Sequence record: MK250027.1
Reading direction: 5' to 3' (one strand)
Length of the DNA stretch: 64,000 bases
Of the stretch, positions 7,748 to 51,851 are shown piece by piece. Under the pieces are notes generated by a model. It was given only the letters and a program-made list of their open reading frames with translations, did no database searches and was not told the DNA's origin. Numbering within the stretch: the stretch's first letter is position 1; each line of letters begins with the position of its first letter. The position numbers were made by a program, and so were the translations under genes.

Positions 7748-10003
7748 TTAATCATCTTCTGAAACACTAATATCATAATTAATATAATTAATACTTGCAA
7801 TATCTCCAAGATAACCAACGCTATCAAACTCTTTATCGATAGTATCAACTTTATCCTATAATGATATAGAAGTAATTACTTTTGTTCCTGATGATTCATC
7901 TGTATTCTCATACGCTATATTTTTTGCTATGTGTTTAAAATACAAACCATTAACTGAATTACTATTAGGTATTGTATCATCAAGGTGCGAAGTAACTCCA
8001 GACGAACTTAATGTATTATTAATAGCGATAGTTAACGCATCATCATTTACATCCTTAATTAAATCTGCAATTTCATTTGTTGATGAAAGATTATCAGGAA
8101 ATGATATAATAATAGAATTAGACCAATCTGATCTTAAAGGATTTGTTGGATAACCTGCTTCTGATATTGATCTTACTTTAATCTCTACACGTTCACCTTT
8201 CTAAATAGGTATATCTATTTGATTAATGTTAACTTCCGTGGAATCTGCGACATTCTCAACAACCCATTTATAGCCGTTACCATCATTTACTTTTGTCTTC
8301 ATCTATGACTATGATATATTCCAATCAGAGAATGTACCTGTAACGCTTGAACCTGTATTCTAATCATTATATGTAAATGTATTTAATAATACAGGTGTAT
8401 TATCTTCTTTAACATAACGATATGCAATATCAAATCCTATAATTTCTTCTTGTAATTCAGAATTTCCTATACGTGTTTTCTATACAGGTATAGAAAAGAA
8501 ACCTCTGATTCTATATTTAGGATCTGTTAATAAGGCACCATTTGAACGAACTTCAGACTAAAACGCAGAAACATTACTTGAATAACTAGACTATGCATTC
8601 TATAATTCCAATGTTTGTGTGTTTATTTGCTCCTGTTTCGCGTTATAATCACTGATGTTAGTAATATTCTATAACTCTGATTTTAAGTCCGCTATGGCAG
8701 ATTTAAGGCTATCTATCTTTGTCTTATCATCTGCAATAAGAGCTGCTGTATTCTTAATAGTTGTTGTGTCAATTGCCGCATTAATTTGTGTGTTAACCTA
8801 TACGACTCTCATATCGGATTCTGATAATGTTGGTGCATTTGGTTTCTAACCACTCCATGCGGTAACAGTTCTCTCCTTAGCCTCATCAATCATCTTTGCG
8901 CCCCAATCAACTACATAATTACTGTAATATTCAGATAATGAAGTTGTTGATACATTACCATTATTATCTTCATATAAAAGATTATCAGTATCAACTCTAA
9001 TCGGTGTTGACCATGTATCTCCTTGAAGATTATATGCTTCTGAAATACCTTTTACATATATAATATCATATTCATGTGCACCAACTCTTACAGAAATAAC
9101 TTTACTTCTGAATGGATCTTCATAATAATTAAGTGTCGCATAAACACCTGGCAAAGCCGCTCCTGTAATTCTCTTTAATCTTACCTTACTTGAATTCTAG
9201 TTAATCGCTATAATCTCAAATATTGAATCACTATATGATAACTAATCTCCAATAGATAACACATTATTTTTCCCCTAATCAATACCTTCGTTTGATATTG
9301 TAGAATATGTTATATTATCCAATGTATACCAAACATTACCGTTAATAATATCTGGATCCTATATAATCTAGAAAATTCCTGATTTAGTATTTCTTACTAA
9401 TGGTAGTTGAACAATCTCTTCATCTTCAGAATATGAAATATTATTATTAGCTAATAATGATTTCAATGAAAGATAATCCATACCAGATGTTATTTGATTA
9501 TTATTCCACAATGTTGTAGCTGAATCATCATTAGAATTAAGAATTACCCTTACAACCTTAACTCTATCTGCATCATCTTCTATCTAACCTGTTAAATCAA
9601 TATCGACAGTTAATCCTGGAAACATTAAGTCTTCAAAGAACCAATTAGTATCTAATTTAAATGTAGATGGATCTTGTAAACCTGCAATCTATGTCGGTGT
9701 CTAAGGAATCGAGCTCAACTTAATAGTTCTTCTTGAACCATCGTTAAGATTAATTGTTCCTTTACCAGTTGAAAGTGAATTAAGCGAATCTTCAACAGCT
9801 TTCAACCTATTAACAATCGAAGCATAACTTGGTAATTGATATTTAGAATTTGTTCCCTATGTATCTTGATATTCATAAGTTACGAATGTATCATTAGTTG
9901 TTAAAGATCTTTGCATAGCGGATAATAATGAAAGTTCATTAGTTTGCTATGCAATAGTCTTACGCATATTCTCTGCAAAACTGTTTATATTATTTGTACT
10001 CAT
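7748..10003 (-). CDS. Putative virion structural protein, 751 aa; TAG=Gln
   Basis: ATG 10003 (MSTNNINSFAENMRK...) to TAA 7748 with only in-frame TAGs; includes track ORF 8846-9154. Confidence 0.75.
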
Positions 10004-10016
10004 CTTATATTATCCG

Positions 10017-11897
10017 TTATTTATTTTCTAATTCTTGTATTCTATTATTTAAATCTTGTATATATTTAATCATTAATGGTATCAATGACTCATAATTGAC
10101 AAATGTTGTTCCTCTCTCATTATCATTTGTTTCATCACCTGTTCTATATACTAACTTATCAAATCCAAATCCTTGTAATATATACTAAGGCAAATCAATA
10201 CTTGGATATACATTATTGTTATATGTATAATAATTAACCTAAATACCGTTTATAATATCATTTATATTACCATTATCTGTTGTCCATTCACCTAATGCAG
10301 TATCAGCTTGTGATTCAACATTAAATATAGGTTTATAAACAGAAGGAACATTATAAGTATATTCATCATTCAAAATTTTTATTGGAGGCGTATAAGATGA
10401 ACCTTGATATATAGATGTATTGATAAAATCATTTTTTAAATTATTAAGTTGAATCTTAATAACATTATTGCCATCGCTTGTAGTTGAATCTGTAGACGTG
10501 TCTGTAATAGGTAATATAACATTTGTCTTTACATTCTATGCAATAATACCAGATGTTTTTGAACCATTAAGGTAACCATCTAATTTAGTTTCTAGTTCCT
10601 CTAATTTTTGTTTATTTTCATCTGTTAACTTAAGTGTTGTCATATAAGCATCTTGAATAGCCATTGTTGACTAAACATTAGTATTCATCACATCAATAGC
10701 TCTGTTAAGATTACTAACAACATCAGAAAAATCAACACTATTAATAGAAGACATTGTTGTATTATCCTATATCATCGCATCTGTATTATCATATACAGAT
10801 AAAGTCTTTATATTAACACGGAATGAATAACTATTACCAAAGAAATTTGCCTTATTAGGACCTCCAAATGATTTCTTCTTAGTTAATGTAGGAATCTTAA
10901 TACCTTCTGCTGTACTTTTTGGTGAATCTAAAAATACAATGCCAAAAAGATTTATTGCATATGCTGATTTCGTAGTATCATTCTAATCATAAACACTATA
11001 ATAAAGAAGAATTGCATTAAAACCAAATTCACATGGTTTTGATGTAATATCACAGAATTGATCTTTAAACTAATTATTAGCATCAATATTTACATCATCA
11101 TAAGAATTAATCTATATTTGATTATTTGTGTCATTACAAAAGTTTCTACAGGCAGTTTGTATCTATGTAATATCTTTTACAATTTCATATGCGTCATTCA
11201 ACTGATAATTTGAATTATTAACATTATCATATCTAGGTTTTGTATCACTTAATATTTTTAATGTATCTACATTATTTGTTCTTCCTTGTAAATGTTCATT
11301 ATCACCACAATTATATGTATGTCCATATATATAATTAGTTTCTGCGGAATCCTAAACCTATTTAAAAAATACAGGACCATTACCATAACTAGTTGGAATA
11401 TTAACATATGTTTCATTAAACATACCAAATTCTGTACTTAATGAATTACCTGCATCTATTGCTCCAAAACATTGAACAGTCCTTGTTTTATAATTGTCGT
11501 TATCTCCTTTTTCTCTATAATAAACGTCATTATTCTTTTGATTTCTCTCTAATGTTAATAAATTATTAATATGTCTATTCTCAAATGATTTTAACCAATG
11601 AAAGAAACAACGCTCAGTAACTGTATGGTATTCTTGATAATTATACTTATCATCATTTAATAATCTTGTTTCAAGATTCATCATATAATTCTATAAATCA
11701 GTTGCAATTGCTATTGATTCCTATTTAAGATCTGTATTACCAAACATTCTTGGAAGATTAAGTAAAGCATAATGTGACATTGCAACACCTGTTGCTCGAC
11801 TATTTAAATTCAAACCAATATCTTCATTAGCAGATGGGAAAACATATAATGTTGCACCGTTATCTCTCAACGGTCTTAATAAAGGTGTTCTAATCAT
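10017..11897 (-). CDS. Putative tail/structural protein, 626 aa, C-terminus resembling an intramolecular-chaperone coiled coil; TAG=Gln
   Basis: ATG 11897 (MIRTPLLRPLRDNGATLYVFPSANED) to TAA 10017; ends VNYESLIPLMIKYIQDLNNRIQELENK; includes track ORF 11358-11684. Confidence 0.7.
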
Positions 11898-11915
11898 TTT
11901 CTTTAAAAATTAATT

Positions 11916-12887
11916 TTATTTTCTCTCTATCATAATATCATCTGCTGAACGAACTGAATAATCTAATACATCCCAAGATGATCCATATTCATCATCATTG
12001 GCAATACATTTCAATGTAATTCTATTTAATTCATCCTTTGATATTCTTAAAAATTTATTTTCTTCCCTTGATAATACAACTCTATAAAATGCTTTTGATT
12101 TACTATCATTAAATCTTAATTTAACTATAGAACCAGGAATTCCATTTATAGAAGCAGTATGTTCATCATTTATAGTAACCGTATGATTGTAATCATAATA
12201 AGTATATATAAATCCAGATTTAATATCATTGTATTGATATTTTGGTAAATTCATTCTTTTTAACTAAATAGCTGTTGCAAACAGCATACTCTAATCAAAA
12301 GTAAATGACTAAGGTTCATTCAAACTCTACTCAGATGATTTACTTGCGCCATATAAACCAATATAACCTTGTTCATCAGAATAACTATTACTAAACTATT
12401 TCTTTAAACTATCAACACTACTTATAATCTATTCTAATGTATCAGCCAATGACTAAACGGTTCCATTTCCTAATTCAACACCAATAGCGCCAGAATTATG
12501 TGCATACTTATTCATATCTGAATTAATTTTATCATATGGTACAGTTTTTAATAAGCCACCATCATTATATAAATAACGTCCATTTAATGCATCATGGTTT
12601 ATACCTTCATTATTACTACCACCAGATCTAATAATCTATTCAAGACTTTTTGTATCTTCAACTGAAAACTATTTAGCTGTTATTTTATTAAATACACCAG
12701 TATTAGCCTTTACATAAGATTTCTAATCATCTGTATTATCTATATTAACTTTAATACATTGTTTATTACTATCATATATATTATCTATATAATCAGATAT
12801 TGATTGATTATTCTCATTAATAATTCTTGGAAGCTAACCAATCATTGTTCTTATAGATATATCATTTAATTTCTCTTTTAAACTCAT
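11916..12887 (-). CDS. Hypothetical late protein, 323 aa; TAG=Gln
   Basis: ATG 12887 in frame with track ORF 11916-12254 across about 10 TAG codons. Confidence 0.7.
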
Positions 12888-13146
12888 CTATATCAAATAA
12901 AGATTTTATTTACTTATTTATTTAGAGAAAATCATACATGTCAAAATTAAATTGATTATTTAAAATAAGTTAAATAAAACTTTATTATATTATATATTTT
13001 ACTAAACTTTTCTAATAATGTTTATCTATATATAAAATAAAAAAATGATATAATAAAGAAAAAATTCTAAATTACATCATTTATATTAATTTCAAAAATA
13101 TTTTACATTTTCCAAGGATCTACCTTTCTAAAAATATTATTTAATA

Positions 13147-13542
13147 NNNNNNNNNNNNNNNNNNNNNNNNNNNNNNNNNNNNNNNNNNNNNNNNNNNNNN
13201 NNNNNNNNNNNNNNNNNNNNNNNNNNNNNNNNNNNNNNNNNNNNNNNNNNNNNNNNNNNNNNNNNNNNNNNNNNNNNNNNNNNNNNNNNNNNNNNNNNNN
13301 NNNNNNNNNNNNNNNNNNNNNNNNNNNNNNNNNNNNNNNNNNNNNNNNNNNNNNNNNNNNNNNNNNNNNNNNNNNNNNNNNNNNNNNNNNNNNNNNNNNN
13401 NNNNNNNNNNNNNNNNNNNNNNNNNNNNNNNNNNNNNNNNNNNNNNNNNNNNNNNNNNNNNNNNNNNNNNNNNNNNNNNNNNNNNNNNNNNNNNNNNNNN
13501 NNNNNNNNNNNNNNNNNNNNNNNNNNNNNNNNNNNNNNNNNN
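13147..13542. other. Assembly gap (396 N) in the divergent intergenic region
   Basis: Run of N. Confidence 0.99.
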
Positions 13543-13686
13543 TGAAAAAAGTCTACATTATTTTAAATTATTTTTTAATTATTTTTAATGTAATTTTAAC
13601 TAATAAAATAGACTTTTAATTAAGACTTTAATATAATTATGCTATATAAATATAAGAAGAGAAAATTATACATATATAAAAGTAAA

Positions 13687-14712
13687 ATGAAAGTTGATAT
13701 AACATTTGATAACAAATGGTTTGTTGTCAGTTCAAATTATCTATTTGAACTTAATGTTATACGCAGAGCTTTTACAAGGGAAATTCCAAATGCGTGGATG
13801 TTAAAGAAGATTACTGACATACAAATTACTGATAGAGAATTCATGAACAAATATAATATGATTTCTACTAATTTGTGGTTAGAAATTATTAAGGTTGCTA
13901 AAAAGTTCAATATAGCAATGGAAATGACTCCAGCTGCACAGAATTATTTAAATTAGTTTACATTAAAGTTTGAAGATTTTAAGAGTTATATAGATGATAT
14001 TTTTGAAGGTGCAGAAACAGATGAAGGAAAAGAATTTAGACCATATGATTATCAGATAAAAGCGGCGTATACATTATTAAAATATAAAAAATGTTGTGGA
14101 GAAATTTCTACTTCAGGTGGAAAAACATTAATTTCATTCATGATATTCAAATATTTAATTGATACACAAAATATAGATAATATTTTATATATTGTTCCAT
14201 CAGTTGACTTAGCTAATCAATCTGCTGAACAATATGAACGATATGAGTCTTACCTTAAGAAACATAATCATAATTGGGAAATAGGAATTCTTAGGTCTGG
14301 TTTAACAAAGAAACAAAAAGAAAAAGTCGAATCATGTAATATATTGTTTGGAACTTTTCAAAGTCTTTGTAAACGTAAAAAAGAGTTTTTTGATAGATTT
14401 GAATCATGTATAATAGATGAGTGTTGTCATCCAGATACATTAATAACAATGGCAGATGGAAATAAAAAGAAAATTTCTGATGTTGTAGAAGGCGATAAAG
14501 TATTTACGTATAATGAAAACACAAAGAAAAAAGAAATACATGAAGTTGAGTATGTATATAAAAATTTATCATCACATGATGTAATATATGAATTAGAAAA
14601 AGAGGATGGTACATTTATTAAATTAACAGGTAATCATAAAGTTTTAACAAAAAATAGAGGTTATGTACGTGTTGATGATTTAAATATAGATGATGATATT
14701 TTAGAGTTTTGA
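13687..14712 (+). CDS. uvsW: UvsW-like SF2 DNA helicase, N-terminal half fused to N-intein; one TAG=Gln
   Basis: Reading through TAG 13954 joins the ORFs: FRPYDYQ (Q motif), ISTSGGKT (Walker A), CIIDE then intein start CCHPDTLITMADG; ends at TGA 14710-14712. Confidence 0.85.
14422..14709 (+). mobile_element. Split intein, N-terminal fragment (96 aa)
   Basis: Block A CCHPDTLITMADG, block B IKLTGNHKVLT, followed directly by a stop codon. Confidence 0.9.
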
Positions 14713-14719
14713 TTTTTTA

Positions 14720-14761
14720 CTTCTAACATGATGTTTAATTATTTATTCATCATGTTAGAAG
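14720..14761 (+). promoter_or_regulatory. 14-bp hairpin sequestering the endonuclease start codon
   Basis: CTTCTAACATGATG (14720-14733) pairs perfectly with CATCATGTTAGAAG (14748-14761), which contains ATG 14752. Confidence 0.65.
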
Positions 14762-15969
14762 ATATGGGTCTAAGAGAAGTTAATATGGATCAATTAAATG
14801 ATAAATCAATTTTATAGAATGTATTAAAAAATGTAGATATGTCTATACATGTTTGGAATAAACATGATTTTCTTATCAATAATAAAATTAATATAGATTT
14901 ATATAACAATGTATTTTTTAATTTTATCAAAAAATTAAGATTAGATGTTTATAATTTTTTAAAAGATAATTATACGGTAGATACAGTATAGGAATTATAT
15001 AACATGGTTTATGGTAAATCATCTATATGTAAAAAATGTGGTAAAAAATTAGAATTTATAAGATTTAATTAGGGATATAAAGATTGTGATAATTGTTATA
15101 AATTAGAAGCAAATAAATTAGGTACAAAAGACAAAATAATAGATTATATTAATAATACACAAAATACTATACCACTTATATAGTTTATATATAAACATCC
15201 TGTTTTAAAAATAGTTTTTTCAAAATTTCCTAAAATTAATACAGAAGAAGAATTATATTTATTTTTATATAATGATAAACCACATACATGTGAATGTTGC
15301 GGTAATAAAACAAAGTTTGTTAGATTTAGACCATTTCATACATACTCTGTATGGCCATATCATTAGTTTTGTTCAATTGAATGTAGAAATAAATGGTGGG
15401 CATAGAAACAGTGTGAAAATAATACAATATATAGAGCAAATGAAGAAACTTTAAATAGAGTTAAAAATGAGAATAGTATTAGAATGAAATAGAAGATTAA
15501 AGATGGTGAATTTACACCATGTTCAACTAATTCCTGGTGCCATTCTAGATATAAAATAAAATTTATTCAAAATAATAAATTAGTTACAAAATTTTTAAGG
15601 TCTTCATGGGAAGTTATATTTCAATTATTAAATCCTAATTTATTATATGAAAAGTTAAGAGTACAGTATATAGGAAAAGATAATAAATTACATAATTATA
15701 TAGTTGATTTTATAGATATTGATAATAAAATTGTATATGAAGTTAAGCCTGATAGTTGTAAAGAAGTTAGAGATAATATATTAAAAAATAATGCTTTAAT
15801 TAATTGGTGTAAACAAAATAATTATGAAATGCATTATATAGATGAAAATTATTTTTAGAAACATATTTTTAATGTTTCTTTATTAAAATATACAGATAAA
15901 GAATATAAAGATAAATTAGTAAATTTAATTAAAAGATATAAAACATTTAAGGTTGATTATGAAAATTAA
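14752..15969 (+). CDS. Free-standing putative homing endonuclease (Zn-ribbon CxxC motifs + PD-(D/E)xK/TnsA-like nuclease), 405 aa; TAG=Gln
   Basis: Open with TAG=Gln; CKKC, CDNC, CECC, CSIEC motifs; C-terminal RSSWE...YIVDFIDIDNKIVYEVKP; its stop overlaps the IntC start. Confidence 0.75.
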
Positions 15970-16075
15970 GAATATTAGAGTTTTAGAATATAAAGGAGAT
16001 GTATATAATTTGAGAATCAAAAGTGAGAATGAGTAGAATCATAATTATTATGCTAATGATTTATGTATAAGTAAT
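15959..16075 (+). mobile_element. Split intein, C-terminal fragment (39 aa)
   Basis: Own ATG; block F VYNLRI...HNYYAN, block G ending SN followed by Cys+1. Confidence 0.9.
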
Positions 16076-16936
16076 TGTCATCATGTAGGTGCTGCAAAAA
16101 GTTTTAAGGATATTTTACAAAAAACAGAAAATTTAAAATATTCTATAGGTGTAACAGGTACATTTCCTAAAGAAAGTATGTATGAGAATTTATATATACA
16201 ATCTATTATAGGACCTGTAATATATAAGTTAACAGCAAATCAATTAATTAATACAGAGAAAAGAGGAACACCTATATATGCAGTAATTCAATATCTTAAA
16301 TGGGCAGATCAAAAAACAAAGGAAACAATGTATATCTATAGAGCAAATAAAAATCCTATGGATATAGGCGCAGGTAGTAAGGTTCTGAAGATCGAAAGGA
16401 AAACGGTTAATGAATCATATACAAGATTAAAGTATATTTGTGATCAAGTTATCAAGACAAAGAAAAATGCTTTGGTACTATTTGGCGATATTAAATATGG
16501 ATATGGTAGAAAAGTATATGATTATATAAAAGATAATTCAGATAAAAATGTTTATTATACAGATGGAAATACACCAAATAAAACAAGAGATTATTATAAA
16601 GCAGAAATGGAAAAAGATACTTCTGGAAATACAGTGATAGTGGCGTCTATCAATACATTTGGTGAAGGTATCGATATTAAAAATCTTTGGTCTATTTTTT
16701 TGGTTGATACAGCGAAGTCTGAAAGATTAGTAAGACAAATATGTGGTCGTGGAATTCGTTTGTATCCAGGAAAAGATAAAGTTGTTATTTTTGATTTCGT
16801 AGATGATTTGAGATATTCTGCAGATCCTAATAAGAGATATAAAGATAATTATTTATGGAAACATGGTCAAGAGAGAAAGAAAATTTATCTTGAACAACAT
16901 TTCCCTGTATATGAGCAGAAGATAGATTTTAAATAA
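15959..16936 (+). CDS. uvsW: C-intein fused to the C-terminal half of the UvsW-like helicase; one TAG=Gln
   Basis: MKIKNIRVLEYKGDVYNLRIKSENEQNHNYYANDLCISN|CHHVG... restores motif II as DE+CHH; later GVTGT (III), TFGEGIDIKNL (V), QICGRGIR (VI). Confidence 0.85.
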
Positions 16937-16993
16937 TTTAAGAAATTATCGTTTAAAGAATAAATAATTAAACGATAATTTTAAATTTTTATT

Positions 16994-18475
16994 ATGTTGT
17001 TAAGTGAAGTCTTATATATAGCAAAAAATATAAATAAATATAAATCTCTTAATGAATCACTTAAGTCTAATATATTATCTGATATATTTCATAAGTTTGA
17101 TTATTCTAATATAACTATTGAACCTGTTAATAAAAACTATTATATAGGTTATACTGATAAGGGCGTTTCATTTTTTGATGTCAAATTTGAATATCAAAGG
17201 TTAGCAGAAAGAAATTAGTTAACACAAGATATGTGTGATACAGTGGAAGGAAGATAGAAAATTATTAATTGTGATTATAAAAAGAAAAAACGTAAGAAAT
17301 TATGGAATGGAACTTATGAAGATAATGGAATAATATATATGATTATGGAAGCTATCAAAAATAAGTCAACACATAAAATCGGTTTATCTGATATAACAGA
17401 TTCAGAATTAATAACTATATCACCAATAGACGCAAAGAAAAAAATATATAAAACTGGATTACAATTTTGGGTTGATTATGATAATAATCTTAGAGCTGTA
17501 GTAATAGATAACACAATAATATTATATATTTAGCAATTAAATCAATATAATTCATGGTTGAAACCAAATCCAGATTATCACGAGAAAACAGATTTCTCTA
17601 CATTTGCTGATAATAGGAATGATGAGTATTTAGAAAATTTTATAAATAAAGCATTTATTAAAATACCAGTTTATAATATATTAACATCTAATGTAGAATT
17701 AAAGAAAGAATTAGGTGCAAATAATGTTAAATCATTATAGAATGTTCCAGGAATATCAAAAGTATATGTGGTAAATACAGAAGGTATGGAAAATTCCAAT
17801 ATAGAGGAAAAACTAAAAACAAGAAGAGATTATAAAATATTTTTAGAGAGTCAAATAGATCTTAATAAGAAAAATATTGAAAGATATTAGAATGAATTAA
17901 AAATTAGGCGTTCGCAAGGTGTTGATTCTAAAATTATAAATAAGATTTATGATTTCCTTGATGTTTGTATGGATACAACAATAGAATTATAGAATTTAGA
18001 TAATGATGTATTGACAAATAAATCCGCCGATGATTTTATAGGAGATACCTATTGGCATTCTGCACCATTAGATTATGTATATTCATCTGCTTTAAAACGA
18101 ATATATCCAGATAGAAGTTTTTTTGATTCAAAAGTAAGAAATATGTATGGTAGAGGAACACATATGGAAACTAATTGGTCTTTTAATTCTATAGGAGATT
18201 GCTTGGTTGTGGCTAATTTAAAAGTTGAAAAATGTATAGAATATTCATAGTCTATAATTGATAGATATGACAAATATAATAATATAAAGAATAAAGCTGA
18301 TATTTCTTAGGATGAAATATTATATGAGTTGAATATATTAAAATCAAAGTATAAAGAATTAGAAGATTTTCTATCTTATAACTCATCTGTATATAATGAA
18401 ATAAGAAGGCAATTAGATAAAGCTAATATAGATCTTGATAAGATAATGACAAAAATAGATAATTTTCAATTTTAA
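16994..18475 (+). CDS. Hypothetical late protein, 493 aa, N-terminal LNES motif; TAG=Gln
   Basis: Track ORFs 16994, 17339, 17558 and 18011 are in one frame separated only by TAG; TAA at 18473-18475. Confidence 0.75.
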
Positions 18476-19981: not shown

Positions 19982-20081
19982 AACTTTTTATATATTTAAT
20001 GTATAATACAAATATAATAGTTAACTGAGTTAATAATCCTCTAATAAAATTAACTTAATTAATAAAGAAAGGAATATTACT

Positions 20082-20927
20082 ATGGGTAAGCAAAAAAGAA
20101 GTGAAAATACGTATCAGAAGATTAACACAATCTTTAAGAGAGATGCGAATAATGTAATTATGCCTTATGATGAGTTTGCACTTCCCGAATTGGAATGGAT
20201 GCGAAATTGTAAGTTTGATGCAGAATCTAAAATCGATGGTACTAATACTCGTATTGAGGTAACTCGTGAATTTATTACATCTGATATTGGTAATAATGAA
20301 GGTATTAGATGGAGTGTTGCATATAAGGGAAAGACTGATAATGCACAAATTCCAAAGATGTTGTATACTTATCTTACTACTGTTCTTACAGAAGATAAAG
20401 TTCTTAATTCACTAGGACTTACAAAAGAGATGTATGTCAATGATGAGTTGATGAAAGAAAAAGGGTGGTCTGTATTGAATGAACAGTTTAATGTATATGA
20501 ATTGGATGAAACAAAGATTCCTAAGAGATATACATTGTATGGTGAAGGTTACGGAAATGGAATACAGTCTGGTGGATACTACAGACAAGATAATTCTTTT
20601 ATCGGATTTGATGTAAAAGTTGATGATATGTATCTCCTTCGAGAAAATCGTGATGAGATCTTTAATAAATTAGGTGTTGATATTGTTCCATTTGTAGGAC
20701 AACTTACTATTGACGAAGCAATTGAAATGGTAAAGAAAGGATTTAGATCTAAAATTGCAAAAGATGATCATCTTGAAGAAGGATTGGTTCTTCGTACACC
20801 TATGGGTTTGAAGAATCGTAGAGGTGAAAGAATTATATTTAAAATTAAAACATGTGATTTCCAGAAATATTTTTCAAAGTATGGAACATATGATAAGGTA
20901 GATCAACCAAAGAATGAAAACTTTTAA
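20082..20927 (+). CDS. RNA ligase (Rnl2-like nucleotidyltransferase)
   Basis: Motifs I ESKIDGTN, III LYGEGYG, IIIa FIGFDVK, IV EEGLVLR, V IFKIK. Confidence 0.85.
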   Translation: MGKQKRSENTYQKINTIFKRDANNVIMPYDEFALPELEWMRNCKFDAESKIDGTNTRIEVTREFITSDIGNNEGIRWSVAYKGKTDNAQIPKMLYTYLTTVLTEDKVLNSLGLTKEMYVNDELMKEKGWSVLNEQFNVYELDETKIPKRYTLYGEGYGNGIQSGGYYRQDNSFIGFDVKVDDMYLLRENRDEIFNKLGVDIVPFVGQLTIDEAIEMVKKGFRSKIAKDDHLEEGLVLRTPMGLKNRRGERIIFKIKTCDFQKYFSKYGTYDKVDQPKNENF

Positions 20928-20930
20928 TAT

Positions 20931-21068
20931 ATGATAGAAATTATTGAAATATGGTTTCCTATTATTGCATTTATTGCATGTTCATATTTAATATATATGG
21001 ATAGAAAACATTTTAAGAAAGTTGAAAAAGAATTAGATAAAATAGAAAAAGATATTCATCATGAATAA
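20931..21068 (+). CDS. Small membrane protein (45 aa)
   Basis: MIEIIEIWFPIIAFIACSYLIYMDRK..., one hydrophobic helix; below the track cutoff. Confidence 0.5.
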   Translation: MIEIIEIWFPIIAFIACSYLIYMDRKHFKKVEKELDKIEKDIHHE

Positions 21069-21105
21069 TTTTTTGATTTTATTTTTTTGTTTGAAATAAA
21101 ATATG

Positions 21106-21113
21106 TATCTTTG
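21106..21113 (+). promoter_or_regulatory. Bacteroidota -7 promoter element
   Basis: TATCTTTG with TTTG upstream. Confidence 0.75.
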
Positions 21114-21160
21114 TATTGTTAATAAAAATAATATTAATTAATTTTTAAATAATAAAAAAT

Positions 21161-21631
21161 ATGATTACACGTAAGGAACTTGTTGCTAAGTACAAGATTG
21201 CAGTTAAGCGAGTAAATGAGTTGGAGAACAAGAAGTATGAGTATAAGACTAATCGACCATGTGCTCCATTTGGTAATGTGAAGAATATGAATATTCCTGA
21301 CATTATTAGAGCTGGCGCAAATGTGCATGATAGTGATGCTAATGTAACAGAGCGTATTAAGCAGTATGGTATTCTTCCAGAGGATTTGAAGAATGCAAAT
21401 GATCATTTGTATGAGGGATTTGCAATTTCTACATGGGACCACGATTTTAAACTTCGTGTAGAGCAAATTCACGATGAGAAGAAGTTGAAGACATATAAGG
21501 AAGTAATGAATAAGTTGTCTGCTAACTTTACTGATGAGGATCGCTTCATGATTGAGATGGGTGAGATTGATGCACTTGACATCGATTTGGATGATGATGC
21601 ACCATCAGATGAAGTAAAGTCTGAAGAGTAA
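21161..21631 (+). CDS. Early hypothetical protein with acidic tail
   Basis: 156-aa ORF with strongly biased AAG/GAG codon use. Confidence 0.8.
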   Translation: MITRKELVAKYKIAVKRVNELENKKYEYKTNRPCAPFGNVKNMNIPDIIRAGANVHDSDANVTERIKQYGILPEDLKNANDHLYEGFAISTWDHDFKLRVEQIHDEKKLKTYKEVMNKLSANFTDEDRFMIEMGEIDALDIDLDDDAPSDEVKSEE

Positions 21632-21725
21632 TATTTGTTACTTAAACAAATATATGTATGGTTAATACTTAACCCAATGTGGTTGGGTATTAACCATTTT
21701 TCATTTTTAATTAAATTAAACTAAT

Positions 21726-22025
21726 ATGGATGAATTTTTAAAACAACTCATATCTAAATATAAACCAAAGTTTTCTCGTGATAAACTTTTTGGTGGATAT
21801 GATATTGATGTATATGATAGAGATCAGATAAAGCACGAAACAATTAATTATTTAAATGAACATTTTCAAAATCCTGATATAAAAAGTGAAGAGTATCATG
21901 ATTATTATAAGAAAATGTTAATAATTAAAGAGTTCGCAGAAACATTTGAAACATATTTTGCAAATTTAAGTTTTAGATTACCAGTACCATCAGGTACAGA
22001 AGTTTATTGTTCACAACGAGATTAA
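21726..22025 (+). CDS. Hypothetical protein
   Basis: ORF, tight operon packing. Confidence 0.7.
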   Translation: MDEFLKQLISKYKPKFSRDKLFGGYDIDVYDRDQIKHETINYLNEHFQNPDIKSEEYHDYYKKMLIIKEFAETFETYFANLSFRLPVPSGTEVYCSQRD

Positions 22026-22028
22026 TAT

Positions 22029-22427
22029 ATGAATAGTTTTATTAAGTTAGATAATGGAATAGTTCTTAATATTTCACAAATAGAAACATTCGGACCAATT
22101 TGGCCATTTGACTTACTAGAGTTCGATGATTCACAACCTATAGGTGATAATATTGGCGATTCTGTTAAACGTTTATTTCAAGATAAAGAACATAATAATA
22201 TTGCAAAAGAAATGGTTAGAACTTCATTTGCTACACCATTAAATTGCAATGATAATATGAGAAAATACGGTGAAGGCAAAATACTTAATTATACGGTTCT
22301 CTTAAAATCTGGTCATAAGTTTTTTATTACTGAAGCAGAATATAATAATATTTTGGAAGTTATGAATTTATCTGCAAATAATGTATATTCTAATGTAGAT
22401 AAAAAGTATACTAAATTTGATTTTTAA
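22029..22427 (+). CDS. Hypothetical protein
   Basis: ORF, tight operon packing. Confidence 0.7.
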   Translation: MNSFIKLDNGIVLNISQIETFGPIWPFDLLEFDDSQPIGDNIGDSVKRLFQDKEHNNIAKEMVRTSFATPLNCNDNMRKYGEGKILNYTVLLKSGHKFFITEAEYNNILEVMNLSANNVYSNVDKKYTKFDF

Positions 22428-22429
22428 TT

Positions 22430-23044
22430 ATGAATTTTGAATACGAAACAACATGTTATAAATTTACAGACAATGATACATATGTCTCTATTGATGATAT
22501 ATTGGATGAGATTGATAAGCATGCTATAAAAATAGGTTGTAGTACTAATAGACCAAAATCCGCAAATGAAATTATAAATGATAATTTGAAACAATGGAAT
22601 AATTTTGAGCCTTATTCAAATACATTTAGAAAGAAACATATTTGTTGGTTTCCTGTATATATACAAATTGGTTTAGATAAAGATCTTGCTGATTATTTTG
22701 TATTGAAAGATATTAGTAATGATTATCATAGAGCAATTTATTATAAGATTTCGGGTGAATATGCGTTTACATTGTGTTATGATGGTTATATATATAAGAG
22801 AGAATCGTTCTCAGATTATTGTGATTATCTTCCATGTTATGTATTACCGTGTACAGCAAAAGATGTATTAGCACATAATTCATGTTGTAAGTTAAAAGAT
22901 ACTGCATTATTGCTGAAGGAAATTTGGGAAGATGTAAAAAAGAACTATTCTGATGCAATTGAGCAAAACATATGGTTTGAAAATGGTTATTACTACCATA
23001 CAGAACATTATATAAAAAATAAGTTTATTCATTTTGATTTTTAA
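22430..23044 (+). CDS. Hypothetical protein
   Basis: ORF, tight operon packing. Confidence 0.7.
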   Translation: MNFEYETTCYKFTDNDTYVSIDDILDEIDKHAIKIGCSTNRPKSANEIINDNLKQWNNFEPYSNTFRKKHICWFPVYIQIGLDKDLADYFVLKDISNDYHRAIYYKISGEYAFTLCYDGYIYKRESFSDYCDYLPCYVLPCTAKDVLAHNSCCKLKDTALLLKEIWEDVKKNYSDAIEQNIWFENGYYYHTEHYIKNKFIHFDF

Positions 23045-23052
23045 TTTATTAT

Positions 23053-24435
23053 ATGTCAAAACAATACGATAAATTTAATTTGGAAGTTGAACAAGATCCA
23101 CTTGTTCAACTTCATAAAACTGATTATAATAATTATAGTGATTTGTCACATTTTGTAGATGAATACTATAAAGCGCAAGCACTTATAAAGGAATGTGGTA
23201 ATTTTTATAAATCTTTTCTTTTAAGTAAACTTTTAACCTATTCTAAACTTACAAATACTTCATACAAAGAAAATGAATATAATTTCTTTAATATTCATAT
23301 AACAGGAATACCATATAAAGCTGAAACATATTGTCTATATGATATGTTTGATGATTTGGATAATAATTATAAAGGGTATTATAATTATAAGTCATTGAAG
23401 GGATATGAAAAACTTGCATATTCACGTGCAGTATTTAAGTTTAAGGAATTTTGTGATAATTCTAAAGATAAGTTATTTACTATAAGAATTGAATGTAACA
23501 GAACTTCATATTTTCCAGGAGATAAAGATAAAGAAACAAATTATTATTTTACATTTAATGATTATATTTTTAAATCATGTATGTGTGAACATTATATTTC
23601 ATCATATAGTTCTATAACATATAATAATAAGTATGATGATGTAAATAATAAAGATCTTCAATCTAAATTAAAAAAACTGGTTGATAAAGAAAAGAAATCT
23701 TTATATGATTATATGAAAGAACTTGATTTTTTATATAAAAAAGAATTTGATACATTCTATAAAGATGAATTAAAAAAATTATTTAAAACTATAAATGTTC
23801 CTATTATTTATATAAATATCGATAATGATTTAAAGGATTGTGCATATTCGTCATATAATTCATATAAGAAAAAAGTTAAATCAAAAGATATAGATAAAGA
23901 TATTAAAGAACTTACAGAAAAGTATAATAATGATGGTGAGCGAACATCATTATATTTAAGTGAAATATTATCTGATGATGAAATTGATAATATGTTTGAT
24001 TCTTTTGAATATAAAGGTTGGTATAGTATGTATGATTGGATCCTGAAATATATTAATGATAATTATTATAATAAGATTATTGAACTTGTAAAACGTAATA
24101 TTGCAGATTCTACATATGCATATAGAACTATTATAAGAACATGTTCAGAATATAATAATAATCAAAAATTATATATTATAGGTAAACATAATGAATCACA
24201 TTATTTTTGTAATCAAAATGATGTAGATAAAATTAAAATAGAACTTATAGAAAGAGAATTAGTATGTACATATATAAAAGTTAATAAACATCTTAAATAC
24301 AGTTGGCCTTCGAATGCACCAACTGTTGTAAATGAATTGACGCGAACAGTTAAGTTTAATGTAGATACAAATTCTGTAAGTTCTTTTAAAGAATCAACAG
24401 ATACATATGAAATAGCAAATAAAGATAGATATTAA
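23053..24435 (+). CDS. Hypothetical protein (460 aa)
   Basis: Long TAG-free ORF. Confidence 0.8.
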   Translation: MSKQYDKFNLEVEQDPLVQLHKTDYNNYSDLSHFVDEYYKAQALIKECGNFYKSFLLSKLLTYSKLTNTSYKENEYNFFNIHITGIPYKAETYCLYDMFDDLDNNYKGYYNYKSLKGYEKLAYSRAVFKFKEFCDNSKDKLFTIRIECNRTSYFPGDKDKETNYYFTFNDYIFKSCMCEHYISSYSSITYNNKYDDVNNKDLQSKLKKLVDKEKKSLYDYMKELDFLYKKEFDTFYKDELKKLFKTINVPIIYINIDNDLKDCAYSSYNSYKKKVKSKDIDKDIKELTEKYNNDGERTSLYLSEILSDDEIDNMFDSFEYKGWYSMYDWILKYINDNYYNKIIELVKRNIADSTYAYRTIIRTCSEYNNNQKLYIIGKHNESHYFCNQNDVDKIKIELIERELVCTYIKVNKHLKYSWPSNAPTVVNELTRTVKFNVDTNSVSSFKESTDTYEIANKDRY

Positions 24436-24492
24436 AATTAATCTGTTACCTAAGTTTTAGGTAACAGATTTTTTTATTTAAAATATTTGATG

Positions 24493-24500
24493 TATCTTTG
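24493..24500 (+). promoter_or_regulatory. Bacteroidota -7 promoter element
   Basis: TATCTTTG. Confidence 0.75.
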
Positions 24501-24539
24501 TAATATAATAAATAAGTTAGATAATTAAAAAATAAAATT

Positions 24540-24746
24540 ATGATTAAATATATTTTTGCGTTTGTAATGTTCCTTATGGTATTTGGAATTATCTGTTTGC
24601 CATTTTATGTAATTTATCAAGGATTCGTATTGGTTGCATCTGGTTCACTATGGGGAATTCTTTCTGTTGCCGTAGGATTGATTATACTTAGGTTGTTTAA
24701 ACCTATTTCAAATTTGTATGAAAATAAAGATTTTAAAATATTTTAA
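24540..24746 (+). CDS. Small membrane protein (2 TM)
   Basis: Two hydrophobic stretches. Confidence 0.7.
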   Translation: MIKYIFAFVMFLMVFGIICLPFYVIYQGFVLVASGSLWGILSVAVGLIILRLFKPISNLYENKDFKIF

Positions 24747-24749
24747 CAT

Positions 24750-25169
24750 ATGGTTTACATTGATATTAAAACAGTTTCATATAATGAACTTAAGAATTTG
24801 ATTAATTCAGAAGCATTTATGTTTGATAATGAAAATGATTCAAATGTAAATCTTACTAAATTGATTCAACCGATGTTTATTAAAATTATGTGCAGAGATA
24901 CATTACGTATTAACGCATATAAGGATAATATTGGTAAAGTTCATATTATGAATGGAGAGAATGAATTTTCAGCTATTAATGAATTGATAAGCGGAAATAT
25001 TTGTATTACAGATTTTCCTGAATCATTTAAGCAGTTCAATAATCTTCCATATAATGAATGGCATTCATATAATAAGAAACAAATAGAGATTACACCTGTA
25101 TTTGAACTTCATATTTTGGAATGTCCTAATGAAGATGAAAAACAGTTTTATTTAAATATGATTAAATAA
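24750..25169 (+). CDS. Hypothetical protein
   Basis: ORF. Confidence 0.7.
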   Translation: MVYIDIKTVSYNELKNLINSEAFMFDNENDSNVNLTKLIQPMFIKIMCRDTLRINAYKDNIGKVHIMNGENEFSAINELISGNICITDFPESFKQFNNLPYNEWHSYNKKQIEITPVFELHILECPNEDEKQFYLNMIK

Positions 25170-25231
25170 ACATTTTTATTGTTCTTCATTATAAATAGTT
25201 GTGAAAGATTAAAATAAAATAATTAATAACT

Positions 25232-25780
25232 ATGGACGATCAGAAACAATATATACAGGATGATAATGAGAATGTATATAAGGTTATGCCAACTCATTAT
25301 CTTAAATTATCTCCATGGAATGATGGTGAGGATCGTCGTGTAATGGAGAAAGATATAAATGGATATAAGTATATATCATATAAAAACGCATGTATGATTA
25401 TTAATAATCAATTTGCGAATAAGACAGAAAAATGGACACATAATGGTAAGGAGTACATTGCATCAAAAATAAATGAAGATAAATCTGTAGATGAATATAC
25501 AGCTTTAATCAGTATGTTACCAAACCATAAAGCTATCCTTCATGATAGCAAGAATCTCATGAAACATTTTAAAGATGAAATGTCTCTTACAATTACATCT
25601 GAGGATAATAGTACAGAATTGAAAATGGTTAAACATAAGGGAAAGATTTATTATATTCTTCTTTTAAATAAACCATGTTCTCGAGTAAAAGCATATAATC
25701 TTTTTGGAGAATTTGTTCAATGGGTAGGAATTAAAGATTGCAAACCTATTTTTTGTGAAACAACTAAAAAATATATTTAA
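25232..25780 (+). CDS. Hypothetical protein
   Basis: ORF. Confidence 0.7.
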   Translation: MDDQKQYIQDDNENVYKVMPTHYLKLSPWNDGEDRRVMEKDINGYKYISYKNACMIINNQFANKTEKWTHNGKEYIASKINEDKSVDEYTALISMLPNHKAILHDSKNLMKHFKDEMSLTITSEDNSTELKMVKHKGKIYYILLLNKPCSRVKAYNLFGEFVQWVGIKDCKPIFCETTKKYI

Positions 25781-25782
25781 TT

Positions 25783-26268
25783 ATGAAATTACATAACGGC
25801 ATTTATCATACAAGAAATTCATATAGTAAAGACTGTAAATTTTGGAAAGAAAAGTGTATTCCTTATATTGAATGGTATAAGAAACATCGACTTAGAAATA
25901 TTCAATTGAGAGAACATAGAATTCCAGATGATTATGATAAGAGAGATGTTATGTCTCATCTTATGCATTGTTATACAGATTTATATATGCAATCACATAT
26001 TGGACGTGTAAAGAAATCTGTTATACGAAAAATATTTAATTATTGGTATAAACAACCGGGCGCATATCTTAAGAATGATGAATATCTTAATTATGATATT
26101 TTAACACCATATCCTATGTATACAGGAGATAGAGATGATGTTAGATTCCCTGTAGGTGAACCTGGTTGTTTTATTCTCTATATTACATTATTTAAAAGAA
26201 ATAAGAATGCTCTTACGAAGAAACAACAAAAATTATTGAATGAACTTCATTCATATAGAGAAAAATAA
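25783..26268 (+). CDS. Hypothetical protein
   Basis: ORF. Confidence 0.7.
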   Translation: MKLHNGIYHTRNSYSKDCKFWKEKCIPYIEWYKKHRLRNIQLREHRIPDDYDKRDVMSHLMHCYTDLYMQSHIGRVKKSVIRKIFNYWYKQPGAYLKNDEYLNYDILTPYPMYTGDRDDVRFPVGEPGCFILYITLFKRNKNALTKKQQKLLNELHSYREK

Positions 26269-26275
26269 ATTTATT

Positions 26276-27130
26276 ATGAATAATTTTGATGATGCAATAA
26301 AAAAGAAATTATTAGAAGATGTTAATAATTTCAATGATATAATTTATAATAGAAAGACTATTAATGAAAGTTCTATTAATAGAATGTTTTATTGGATTAA
26401 TACATGTGATTGCGCATTTATTATTGCATTTAGATATGAATTAACAAATGTAGTAAATCCTGATAAAACATATTACGGACCTAATAATGATTGGAAAGAT
26501 AAAAAGATATTCACTCATGAAGAGAATCGCATGAAGAATAAATTGCTTTATGGTGAATTACTTAAATTAAAATATGGTGTTATCAAGGTAAAAGGTGTAT
26601 ATCCAGAAGGTATGGATAAAGAATCATCTGAAGAAAGTTATTTAGTTGTAAATAGATTTAATGATCTTGAATTTTTAAATAATATTTTAAGATTAGGAGA
26701 ATTTTATAATCAAGACTCTATCTATTATAAGCCGAAGAATAAAACATATGGTTATCTTATAGGCACGAATAATGCATACCCAGGTTATCATAAGAAAGGA
26801 GATGAAAGTACATTAAAATTAGGTACTGCTTCAAATTTTATGTCACGACTTGGAAATAAAGCATTCTCATTTATTCCAAAAAATGCTATTAAATTTAATA
26901 ATAAAGAAGATGCAGTAAATACAGAATCTGAATATCAAAAGTATTGGACAGATTATTCAGGAACGTCATTTAAAGATAGAAAAAAGAACAGAACAATAAA
27001 TCCTAAATTACAAGAAGCTTTAGAATTTTGGAGAACTAATTTAGGTGGTATTGATATTATTGAAAAAATGCATCCAAAAACAAGATTATGTATGTTTAGT
27101 TTTTTAAGAGAAAATTTAAATAATGAATAA
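26276..27130 (+). CDS. Conserved phage hypothetical protein (INESS...AFR...KGVYPE...EESYLVVN...QDSI pattern)
   Basis: ORF; start moved to the second Met to avoid overlap with the upstream gene. Confidence 0.7.
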   Translation: MNNFDDAIKKKLLEDVNNFNDIIYNRKTINESSINRMFYWINTCDCAFIIAFRYELTNVVNPDKTYYGPNNDWKDKKIFTHEENRMKNKLLYGELLKLKYGVIKVKGVYPEGMDKESSEESYLVVNRFNDLEFLNNILRLGEFYNQDSIYYKPKNKTYGYLIGTNNAYPGYHKKGDESTLKLGTASNFMSRLGNKAFSFIPKNAIKFNNKEDAVNTESEYQKYWTDYSGTSFKDRKKNRTINPKLQEALEFWRTNLGGIDIIEKMHPKTRLCMFSFLRENLNNE

Positions 27131-28133: not shown

Positions 28134-28175
28134 AATTTCTTCTATAAATAGATAGAATAAAGAAAATTAGGAATA

Positions 28176-29300
28176 ATGCCTAAGAAAGTTTAGTTTGAAG
28201 AATTTGAGTAGAGATTAAAAAATAAATTTGGTGATAAGTTTAAATATATTGATTTAAGTTTAATAGATAAAGAAAACTTTAATTATTTAGATAAGTATCC
28301 TATTAAATGTTTAATACATAATAAAATAGCATATAAAGAGCCGAAAATCTTTTTAAGATCTACAACATTAAATATATGTAGTAAATGTCAAAGGGAATAG
28401 CAAGTTCGTGATTCACATAAAATGCATGAAGGTAAAGAAAGACATTATACATCAGTTGATGAATTTCTAGAGCGTTTATATTAGAAATATAAAGATAAAA
28501 TAACTATTGATAAAAATGATATTTTATTAAATAAAAATGGTTCAGTAAATTTTTCATAGAAAATGAAATTTATATGTCAAAAACATGGTGAATTTTATTG
28601 TAAACCATCCGATATATTTCGTTCAACTCATGGATGCTCAAAATGTGCTAATGAATATATGAAATTAAAAAATATTCAATATGGTGAAGAACGAAGATAG
28701 TCATTTATAAATGATGCTATTAAAATTCATGGTAATCAATATGATTATTCAAAGGTTGATATAACAGGTAAACTAAAAAAAGTTGAAATTATATGTAAAG
28801 ATCACGGTTCATTTTTTATGATGCCATCTTTACATTTAAGAGGTGAAGGTTGTAAACTTTGTAATAAAACAAATTTATTAAATTGTGAACGACGTTTATA
28901 TCAAATATTAATTGATAATTTTCCTAATGAAGAAATTATTAAATAGTATCATAACTTTTTAGGAAGACAAAGTTTAGATTTTTATTTTCCTAAATATAAA
29001 ATAGGAATAGAATATCAAGGTAAGCAACATTTTGTTACTAGTGAATATTTACATAATGACACAAGGCATTCATTAAAACATTAGAAAGAACTTGATGAAA
29101 AGAAGTTCAATAAATGTAAAGAACATAATGTTACACTTTTATATTTTACATTTGATAAATAGTATGAAAATATTGAATATTACTCAAAACTATATGTAAA
29201 TATAAAAGACTTAATTGAAAAAATACAATATATAATAAATAATTACAATGTTTGCGTTAATAGTAATACAGACATTGAGCAACAAAAATTAAATACATAA
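28176..29300 (+). CDS. Putative homing endonuclease (repeated C-x2-HG...GC-x2-C modules + Vsr/DUF559-like nuclease), 374 aa; TAG=Gln; absent from the ORF track
   Basis: Manual translation: HGNQYDYSKV...IICKDHGSF...GEGCKLC; LDFYFPKYKIGIEYQGKQHF; several in-frame TAG. Confidence 0.8.
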
Positions 29301-37646: not shown

Positions 37647-37768
37647 AATATGAGTAAAGAAACAAATATACATTTGAAAGCAATAATATAGGTAATTATA
37701 TTATTTTTAATTTTAGGAATAATATATTTTATAATAACTTTATAATTCAAAATTAAATCTATTTAAGC

Positions 37769-38275: not shown

Positions 38276-38373
38276 TTAAATATTATTATAGGTGATTAGC
38301 AAATTATAGTTAATCACCTATAACTTTTTATATATTTTCTTATATAATCTTTAACTAATAATATTTTTAATTT

Positions 38374-42225: not shown

Positions 42226-42231
42226 TTATTA

Positions 42232-43016: not shown

Positions 43017-43088
43017 TGGGGATTAGTATAGTGGTCAGTACAGAGGTCTCTAAAACCTTTAGGCCGAGTTCGAGTCTCGGATCCCCAA
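43017..43088 (+). tRNA. Amber suppressor tRNA (anticodon CUA), Gln-type
   Basis: Acceptor TGGGGAT/ATCCCCA (U1-A72), D stem GTAT/GTAC, anticodon arm GAGGT-CTCTAAA-ACCTT, T arm CCGAG-TTCGAGT-CTCGG. Confidence 0.92.
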
Positions 43089-43130
43089 CAATTAAATGAC
43101 ATAAGTAATATTTTAAAGATTTGATGAATT

Positions 43131-47377: not shown

Positions 47378-47461
47378 TCAAAATATTAAAGGATTAGATA
47401 TTGAATTATCTAATCCTTTATTCATTTAAAAATAAATATATTAAAATATATTATTATAATA

Positions 47462-51842: not shown

Positions 51843-51851
51843 CAAGTAAAT

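Follow-up and report, generated by a model that had tools for sequence, protein, structure and literature searches.

The DnaE inteins of Npu and Ssp are split at the canonical site into an N-terminal fragment (IntN) of ~100 amino acids (aa) and a C-terminal fragment (IntC) of ~36-39 aa, which ends in ...SN ahead of a Cys, and they splice by class-1 chemistry. Their IntN is acidic and their IntC basic. The two halves are encoded at distant loci of a bacterial host, with no endonuclease between them. In the fractured genes that Dassa et al. 2009 described from environmental phages (among them gp41-1, NrdJ-1 and IMPDH-1), a split intein with the canonical split site interrupts a phage gene of DNA metabolism, and a free-standing endonuclease gene lies between IntN and IntC (PMC2677866). 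A gene-breaking model has been proposed for the entry of endonucleases into inteins (PMC2677866). The same arrangement is found in the uvsW helicase gene of a 64,000-nucleotide stretch of sequence record MK250027.1 (the window, meaning that whole stretch). We consider it highly probable that the element in this gene is a mobile split intein with its homing nuclease: trans-splicing would rebuild UvsW, and the nuclease would spread the element, with both activities read from sequence comparisons.

The element is 1654 bp long (14422-16075) and splits uvsW exactly between the E and the C of motif II (DE/CH, where the slash marks the insertion point). One gene has thereby been turned into three co-oriented genes, N-extein-IntN, nuclease and IntC-C-extein, laid out as follows:

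13687-14421, + strand: N-extein, residues 1-245 of a UvsW-like superfamily 2 (SF2) helicase, motifs I-II, ending ...CIIDE (Pfam ResIII and DEAD)
14422-14712, + strand: IntN, 96 aa (C246-F341) with block B TGNH, then TGA at 14710-14712 (TIGR01445, PDB inteins)
14720-14761, + strand: RNA hairpin with a perfect 14-bp stem (folding -26.7 kcal/mol, z -4.5)
14752-15969, + strand: free-standing nuclease, a putative homing endonuclease of 405 aa with eight in-frame TAG codons (PHROGs, fold, catalytic residues)
15959-16075, + strand: IntC, 39 aa, ending ...CISN, with an in-frame TAG (family profile, invariant residues)
16076-16936, + strand: C-extein, CHHVG... (the rest of motif II through RecA2), 286 aa and stop (Pfam Helicase_C)
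16944-16990, + strand: terminator-like hairpin with a U-rich tail, 3' of the C-half (folding z -2.85)

The open reading frame (ORF) of the N-half, 13687-14709, encodes 341 aa, and its last 96 residues, which open with CCHPDTLI..., begin at C246 directly after ...CIIDE. The nuclease ORF encodes 405 aa from ATG 14752 or 413 aa from ATG 14728 and stops at TAA 15967-15969. The C-half starts with its own ATG at 15959, in a different frame from the nuclease and overlapping the nuclease stop by 11 nucleotides (nt), and CHHVG follows directly after the 39 residues of IntC. Each helicase half contains one TAG codon, at 13954-13956 (N-extein codon 90) and 16034-16036 (IntC codon 26). A scan of the + strand found no terminator-like site between the three genes. 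PHROGs holds separate families for the N-half plus IntN and for IntC plus the C-half, the latter being phrog_9690, which spans both parts. A first-pass annotation of the window had proposed this layout, with a 96-aa IntN closed by TGA, a 405-aa nuclease, a C-half with its own ATG in another frame over the nuclease stop, a 39-aa IntC ending in SN before CHHVG and a TAG codon in each half; all of these coordinates and counts hold.

The locus also shares the finer features of the Dassa loci. These likewise carry a hairpin at the start of the endonuclease gene (PMC2677866), and the 3' end of their endonuclease gene overlaps the start of IntC by 6-69 bp, compared with 11 nt here (PMC2677866). In addition, the IntN of the window matches NrdJ-1, an intein of the Dassa type, in the PDB. 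The likeness to known fractured genes that had been suggested from the letters of the window is thus borne out by the nuclease between IntN and IntC, the hairpin at its start codon and the 11-nt overlap (PMC2677866).

Several lines of evidence identify the intein. The NCBIfam intein_Nterm model TIGR01445 matches residues 246-321 from its first position (C246) at 38.6 bits against a cut-off of 24.5, and in a PDB search IntN matches the solved inteins NrdJ-1 (8ubs) and Ssp DnaB (1mi8) with E ~2e-5. As a single sequence, IntC has no match in the PDB sequence search; a profile of 12 relatives matches solely intein C-termini there (6y75/6tmm, 7cfv and 8ubs), weakly, at E 0.01-1.5. The residues expected for splicing are present, namely Cys1 (C246), the TGNH of block B (T314-G-N-H317), the terminal Asn (S38-N39) and the +1 Cys (C40), and all of them are invariant among relatives. 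Within IntC, V15-Y-N-L, H28-N-Y, A32-N, S38-N39 and the +1 C40 are invariant in the 12 relatives. IntN has a net charge of -6, and the N-terminus of IntC is basic.

Complex prediction was carried by a sister pair, residues 240-341 of P0083 with residues 1-46 of P0203, which are identical to the window's halves at 79/96 (IntN) and 33/39 (IntC) positions. The pair scored 0.75 against 0.01 for the best control. Of 78 solved complexes 51 attain this mark, as do 2 of 108 mismatched pairs; the pair's runs agree in at least 90% of contacts, with a partner pLDDT (predicted local model confidence) of at least 73. Structures of split-intein complexes have been solved, so the high score may come from resemblance to them and does not prove binding.

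With respect to the host gene, an intein-free relative of 531 aa (P0084) aligns to T4 UvsW (2oca) with E 2.5e-35, residues 113-529 against 108-501, and the DECH box of the one falls on the DECH of the other. This alignment identifies the interrupted gene as a UvsW-type SF2 helicase with motif II DECH and places the insertion between the E and the C of that motif.

Over the 3401 bases at 13600-17000, the window is 100% identical to the Prevotella phages Lak-B4, Lak-B7 and Lak-B8 and 99.7% identical to Lak-B2, megaphages of ~550 kb assembled from baboon faeces. Lak phages are reported to read TAG as Gln and to encode release factor 2 together with a suppressor tRNA for TAG (anticodon CTA; PMC6784885, PMC8346664). 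The window represents the Lak-B4/B7/B8 type of Prevotella megaphage and reads TAG as Gln. ORFs of at least 150 aa cover 43% of it under translation table 11, 80% with TAG as sense and 46% with TGA as sense, and it encodes the matching tRNA:

43017-43089, + strand: suppressor tRNA with anticodon CTA, which would decode TAG in both helicase halves and in the nuclease

The presence of this tRNA, together with the coverage obtained with TAG and with TGA as sense, makes TGA 14710 a true stop.

Sister genomes show what uvsW looks like when the element is absent. Lak-B1, B3, B5, B6 and B9, A1 and A2, and C1 carry a precise empty allele, their matches covering half of the query in two pieces. When 14422-16075 (1654 bp) is taken out of the window, the remainder aligns to Lak-B1 without a gap over 1747/1747 bp, and the product of the Lak-B1 allele reads ...CICDECHHAG.... 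The first-pass annotation had placed a naturally split intein with a free-standing endonuclease in the Walker B motif (motif II) of an SF2 helicase and had proposed intein-free uvsW alleles of related phages as a check. That reading is supported by TIGR01445, the PDB inteins, the catalytic residues and the sister alleles, which lack the element precisely, read ...DECHH... and align to the DECH of T4 UvsW.

The flanks of the element carry a further signal, a diverged extein tract in two parts:

14401-14421, + strand: left part (-21 to -1), defined by differences to the Lak-B1 empty allele
16076-16162, + strand: right part (+0 to +86), read as a signature of co-conversion or of an imported flank

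Of the 52 differences to Lak-B1, 34 fall within -21..+86 of the junction (31% divergence), while the remaining 1639 bp differ by 1.1%. The element is polymorphic for presence and absence among Lak-B genomes that are ~1% different outside the tract. Within the tract the window shares 69% identity with each of the other alleles, which suggests that this sequence was imported from a donor outside the sampled genomes. Lak-B2 carries the element and has the Lak-B1 base at all ten positions left of -82 at which it differs from the window, a pattern that marks Lak-B2 as a recombinant with a B1-like left flank and a crossover near the element. Such flanks are the expected trace of homing with co-conversion; ordinary recombination could also produce them.

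A diverged copy of the locus allowed selection to be gauged. A 549-kb Lak contig from a separate assembly (L007) carries the same three genes on an A/C-type backbone, with 9-16% nucleotide divergence from the window across segments, and keeps the TGA, the hairpin and the overlap of ATG and stop. Between the two copies the synonymous divergence (dS) is 0.43-0.83, and the ratio of nonsynonymous to synonymous divergence (dN/dS) is 0.092 for the N-extein, 0.071 for IntN, 0.10 for IntC and 0.091 for the C-extein, compared with 0.245 for the nuclease. The intein halves are constrained as strongly as the helicase, and the nuclease somewhat less. In a further Lak-like, TAG-recoded contig (L011), the halves of the split intein lie 67 bp apart (1197-1266) and the nuclease gene is missing; the stretch between these halves has no significant hairpin (z -0.9). 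Since L011 keeps the split intein without the nuclease, the two-piece helicase is maintained on its own. We also observed a TAG codon in the IntN of L011 itself (Q264).

The need for amber suppression can be placed in the same comparison. The TAG at codon 90 is conserved in all Lak uvsW alleles, empty ones included, whereas IntC codon 26 is TAG in the window, CAG in L011 and TTA in L007. It had been proposed that assembly of the helicase needs both amber suppression and trans-splicing. TAG does occur in both halves; the suppression, however, is nothing special to this locus, since the empty alleles share codon 90 and the need is general to Lak uvsW, with only the IntC TAG being allele-specific.

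The nuclease was characterized through its family and its modelled fold. It belongs to phrog_15427 'endonuclease' (E 7e-24, PHROGs), and in 56 homologues E308, D327 and E338-x-K340 are invariant and two Cys4 clusters are invariant or nearly so. Its parts are:

~15028-15096 and ~15289-15384: two Cys4 zinc-ribbon-like modules
~15472-15966: C-terminal PD-(D/E)xK domain

The AlphaFold2 (AF2) model of the protein has a pLDDT of 92. Foldseek relates it to TnsA with a probability of 0.99 (E 8e-3), and in VIA-align TnsA (1t0f) is the best structural match, with Z 9.1 and a root-mean-square deviation (rmsd) of 3.0 over 127 residues; the scores against Vsr (Z 5.9) and I-Bth0305I (Z 5.4) denote likeness at the level of the fold only. 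Pfam Tn7_TnsA-like_N (PF08722) is matched by 27 of the 56 relatives, though not by the window's own protein, and NUMOD3 occurs in some of them. A PDB search with the single sequence gave nothing meaningful, and the profile found a weak match to the T7 endonuclease I core alone (E 0.07). On the modelled fold and the catalytic residues, the nuclease is classed as a classical PD-(D/E)xK enzyme, TnsA-like, with zinc-ribbon-like modules predicted to bind DNA. Two other types were rejected. A Vsr-like (EDxHD) enzyme finds no sequence or profile match to 3r3p or 1cw0, and the catalytic Lys (K340) is retained; a GIY-YIG enzyme finds no such Pfam match in the nuclease or its 56 relatives.

The hairpin stem at 14720-14761 encloses ATG 14728, ATG 14731 and ATG 14752, and ATG 14764 lies 3 nt beyond it. 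In L007 both arms of the stem are identical to those of the window, the loop has diverged and the hairpin still stands out (z -4.05). The ATGs in the 5' arm run into a TAA in L007, so the nuclease probably starts at ATG 14752, or at ATG 14764 past the stem. Its TAG density of 1.9 per 100 codons resembles that of the TAG-rich genes of the window, compared with 0.3 in the helicase halves. In Lak-B2 the nuclease gene is single-copy. The nearest record to the window's own assembly, G001 (86 kb), matches neither the nuclease nor the intein model, a result that carries no information.

The IntN and nuclease ORFs of the window lie in one frame, with TGA 14710 between them (14710-14727), and read-through would yield an IntN-nuclease fusion resembling the natural fusions P0042 and P0273. 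As a conserved feature this fusion was rejected: the L007 element is 1655 bp long, its frames differ and a TAA stands in the loop. Elsewhere, the nuclease core (15693-15865) shows 71-74% DNA identity to the Campylobacter T4-like phages CPt10 and vB_CjeM_WX1 and to an uncultured 462-kb phage, the matching region of CPt10 being annotated as a pseudogene.

The element is not confined to Lak. Salmonella phage S16 (HQ331142; gp114/gp114.1/gp115) and Proteus phage PM2 (MF001355) have the same layout at the same DE/CH site of uvsW and carry members of the same element family. IntN is 54% and 50% identical between the window and S16 and PM2, IntC 43% and the nuclease 34%; between Lak and S16 the intein halves are more alike than the helicase around them, with 54% for IntN against 25% for the N-extein and 43% for IntC against 30% for the C-extein. 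The S16 and PM2 genes, annotated merely as helicase, hypothetical and helicase, differ from those of Lak in using the standard code and in a shorter nuclease of 291 aa with one Cys-rich module. Their nuclease start overlaps the stop of the N-half, and, unlike the window, they have no comparable hairpin. Among the best 120 clusters (90% identity) for the N-half, 41 are proteins of 307-386 aa with a terminal intein domain, and under a conservative motif test IntN closes the protein in 84 of the best 150 representatives (50% identity). In its emphasis the first-pass reading needs correction here: the locus is not unique, as the same element at the same site occurs in S16, PM2 and many metagenomic phages.

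Other members of the family show further architectures. Contiguous mini-inteins occur in P0249, P0250, P0252, P0321 and P0366. In P0042 (L008-L010), P0273, P0278, P0308 and P0354, one reading frame runs from the N-extein through IntN into the nuclease, and IntC has a gene of its own. These architectures correspond to stages of the gene-breaking model (PMC2677866).

Side observations were made on some of these relatives. In the standard-code phage of L008-L010 (1366-4348), N-extein, IntN and nuclease form one ORF of 687 aa whose end is overlapped by IntC plus C-half over 23 nt, and T5orf172/MUG113-type genes lie immediately downstream. A metagenomic UvsW-like N-half of 640 aa (P0277) contains two inteins, a full one in Walker A (...ESPTG/C...HHN/SGKS...) and a C-terminal split IntN at DE/C. 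In S16 (L002, 2524-3159) a separately annotated homing endonuclease, gp113, lies between inh and the split uvsW, in the position of T4 segE, whose target is uvsW (PMC2988022). With gp113 beside its split uvsW, the uvsW region of S16 would carry two mobile nucleases.

Taken together, the data support the following sequence of events. A 1654-bp mobile element would have entered the uvsW of a Lak-B phage at motif II (Walker B), precisely between Glu and Cys in the DECH box. The helicase halves would be translated separately, both dependent on the amber suppressor of the phage, after which the acidic IntN and IntC with its basic N-terminus would fold together into one Hint domain. Class-1 trans-splicing through Cys1, TGNH, the terminal Asn and the +1 Cys would then join ...IIDE to CHHVG..., rebuild an intact UvsW of ~531 aa and release the intein pieces. 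Expression of the nuclease would be limited both by the hairpin around its start codon and by the eight TAG codons in its gene. Where related Lak phages infect together, the nuclease would cleave the uvsW allele that lacks the element, and repair would copy in the element plus neighbouring extein sequence, which amounts to homing.

A more speculative extension follows from the TAG in IntC, the eight TAG codons of the nuclease and its hairpin-buried start. The element might act less as a pure parasite than as a two-key timer that makes active UvsW and homing depend on the amber suppressor and then on trans-splicing; we regard this idea as doubtful. T4 UvsW switches replication from an origin-dependent to a recombination-dependent mode. 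If the timer were true, the timing of the replication switch in Lak-B4-type phages would be set by recoding and splicing.

Several observations weigh against a mobile, trans-splicing element. Pfam Intein_splicing (PF14890) scores the N-half alone at 34.7 bits, slightly below its cut-off of 35.8, and the window's nuclease has no Pfam match above cut-off. The pair that passed complex prediction consists of relatives and does not include the window's own IntC. Public runs matching the stretch comprise two small ones (Logan contigs) and no RNA run. From -109 to +79 the extein flanks of L007 match the Lak-A1 empty allele exactly, so the diverged tract is specific to the B4-type allele and no general requirement for immunity. 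In IntC the penultimate His is replaced by Ser and the block F Asp by Asn (VYNL). Npu DnaE likewise terminates in ...ASN, so the Ser before the terminal Asn is not disqualifying.

These points bear on different alternatives. It is hardly credible that the intein is really contiguous and that the TGA and the frame shift are assembly or sequencing errors. Contiguous mini-intein forms do exist in the family, as listed above, and the Logan contig pieces (14257-14451, 14433-14664 and 15359-15567, all exact matches) span neither 14710 nor 15959. The sequence is nevertheless identical in Lak-B4/B7/B8 and 99.7% identical in B2, Logan and ENA assemblies contain the identical nuclease ORF (P0004), the independently assembled L007 keeps stop, hairpin and overlap at 9-16% divergence, the cultured phages S16 and PM2 show the same three-ORF layout, IntN is the last part of at least 84 cluster representatives (50% identity), and TGA is a true stop in this genome. 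A uvsW destroyed by the insertion of the nuclease, with its pieces decaying, is very improbable: the interruption does fall in an essential motif and many sister genomes have an intact copy, but extein dN/dS is ~0.09 between two element-bearing genomes at a dS of 0.5-0.8, there are no stops besides the recoded TAG, and the nuclease-less split form is maintained in L011 within an arrangement that is widespread. The halves might instead associate through their intein pieces without splicing, as dimerisation handles, and the missing penultimate His and block F Asp of IntC would suit this, as would the non-covalent assembly documented for a fractured phage gene, that of Aeh1 NrdA (PMC3045599). We find this improbable. 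Association would not need Cys1, TGNH, the terminal Asn and the +1 Cys, which are invariant in very diverged relatives; the intein halves have a dN/dS as low as that of the helicase; and, with the insertion inside the DECH catalytic box, an unspliced complex would be expected to leave motif II with a Hint domain of ~135 aa lodged between its Glu and its His.

The alternative that bears on mobility rather than splicing deserves more weight, although we still judge it rather unlikely. In this reading the intein halves would still work, the nuclease would have ceased to home (being inactive or in another role), and presence and absence would result from ordinary recombination between co-infecting strains. 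The nuclease dN/dS of 0.245, higher than that of its neighbours, the loss of the gene in L011 and the empty-allele flanks of L007 would all fit. That same ratio still denotes purifying selection, however; the nuclease family has kept its catalytic E/D/ExK residues without change, L007 preserves the stem of the hairpin at the start codon, and co-conversion would suit both the diverged flank tract and the recombinant Lak-B2. On balance, a trans-splicing intein that moves by means of its nuclease remains our preferred reading.

We also recorded features of the window outside the element. TAG usage is patchy, with TAG-free gene blocks set against blocks of 2-4 TAG per 100 codons (20037-27127 and 37757-41668 against 7751-12905, 28161-29297, 42226-42990 and 45461-48088), in agreement with the published Lak pattern. 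The CTA tRNA begins with UGGGG and has a U1:A72 pair, which we take to recall tRNA-Gln, and eight more tRNA genes lie in a cluster (51485-54386). The promoter region of the operon is unreadable because 396 consecutive N (13147-13542) directly precede the uvsW N-half. A sigma-70 promoter scan was uninformative (38 sites against 37.1 expected). The adjoining gene downstream (16994-18475) encodes 493 aa and contains 8 TAG codons.

In Lak-B2 (MK250021.1), five further matches to the Intein_splicing model were observed (L015 and L017-L020), with a decayed nuclease-like remnant at 161909-162127 (L014) near one of them. Lak genomes seem to carry several inteins, which go unmentioned in the Lak papers. 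The further loci matched by the Intein_splicing model in Lak-B2 are:

519915-522251
320388-320723
527182-528261
526516-527283
164077-164370

These findings have several implications. Empty site, contiguous mini-intein, split intein without nuclease, split intein with free nuclease and IntN-nuclease fusion are all found in one family, so the gene-breaking model can be tested on real intermediates. The cultured members S16 and PM2 are open to experiments that the uncultured Lak phage precludes. The family is also a source of numerous diverged natural IntN/IntC pairs whose +1 residue is Cys, candidates for protein-ligation tools, and an orthogonal split-intein pair for engineering, as first suggested for this locus, is a candidate prospect. 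For annotation, triplets of 'helicase / hypothetical / helicase' in T4-like and Lak genomes may be read as one spliced UvsW.

In our literature search, with subscription journals lying outside its coverage, no paper connected a split intein to UvsW, S16 or Lak, and none described the S16/PM2 layout in those terms. Neither inteins nor UvsW come up in the Lak papers (PMC6784885, PMC8346664). A prior description is possible. The fractured-gene arrangement itself is already known, and UvsW at DE/CH is a new example of it.

Compared with other described systems, the locus combines features found separately elsewhere. It resembles Npu and Ssp DnaE in split site, sizes of the halves, the ...SN and Cys at the junction, class-1 chemistry and the charges of the halves. 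Aeh1 nrdA/mobE is also an essential phage gene fractured by a free-standing endonuclease, with a hairpin that limits translation of the endonuclease and an endonuclease gene that overlaps the downstream gene; unlike the window, it has no intein, and its pieces assemble non-covalently (PMC2677866, PMC3045599). In T4-like phages, mobile endonucleases are known to target uvsW (PMC2988022). T4 SegE is a free-standing GIY-YIG endonuclease that adjoins and targets uvsW (PMC2988022), although it sits beside the gene rather than inside it and, unlike the nuclease of the window, comes with no intein (PMC2988022). I-Bth0305I and the other Vsr-like (EDxHD) enzymes, as well as TnsA of Tn7, have the restriction-endonuclease-like fold in common with the window's nuclease. 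The latter keeps the catalytic Lys (E338-x-K340), in contrast to the EDxHD enzymes, which use His as general base, and its putative role in homing sets it apart from TnsA, a transposase subunit. With respect to the Dassa loci, the window differs in its host gene, as UvsW and its DE/CH site are absent from the host enzyme types listed there (PMC2677866), in its recoded TAG codons and in its nuclease, which is TnsA-like PD-(D/E)xK with a classical ExK where theirs are GIY-YIG or Vsr-like. UvsW, interrupted at its DE/CH catalytic box, would join the genes known to be broken up by a split intein plus a putative homing nuclease, and the endonuclease types of such loci would gain a TnsA-like PD-(D/E)xK enzyme.

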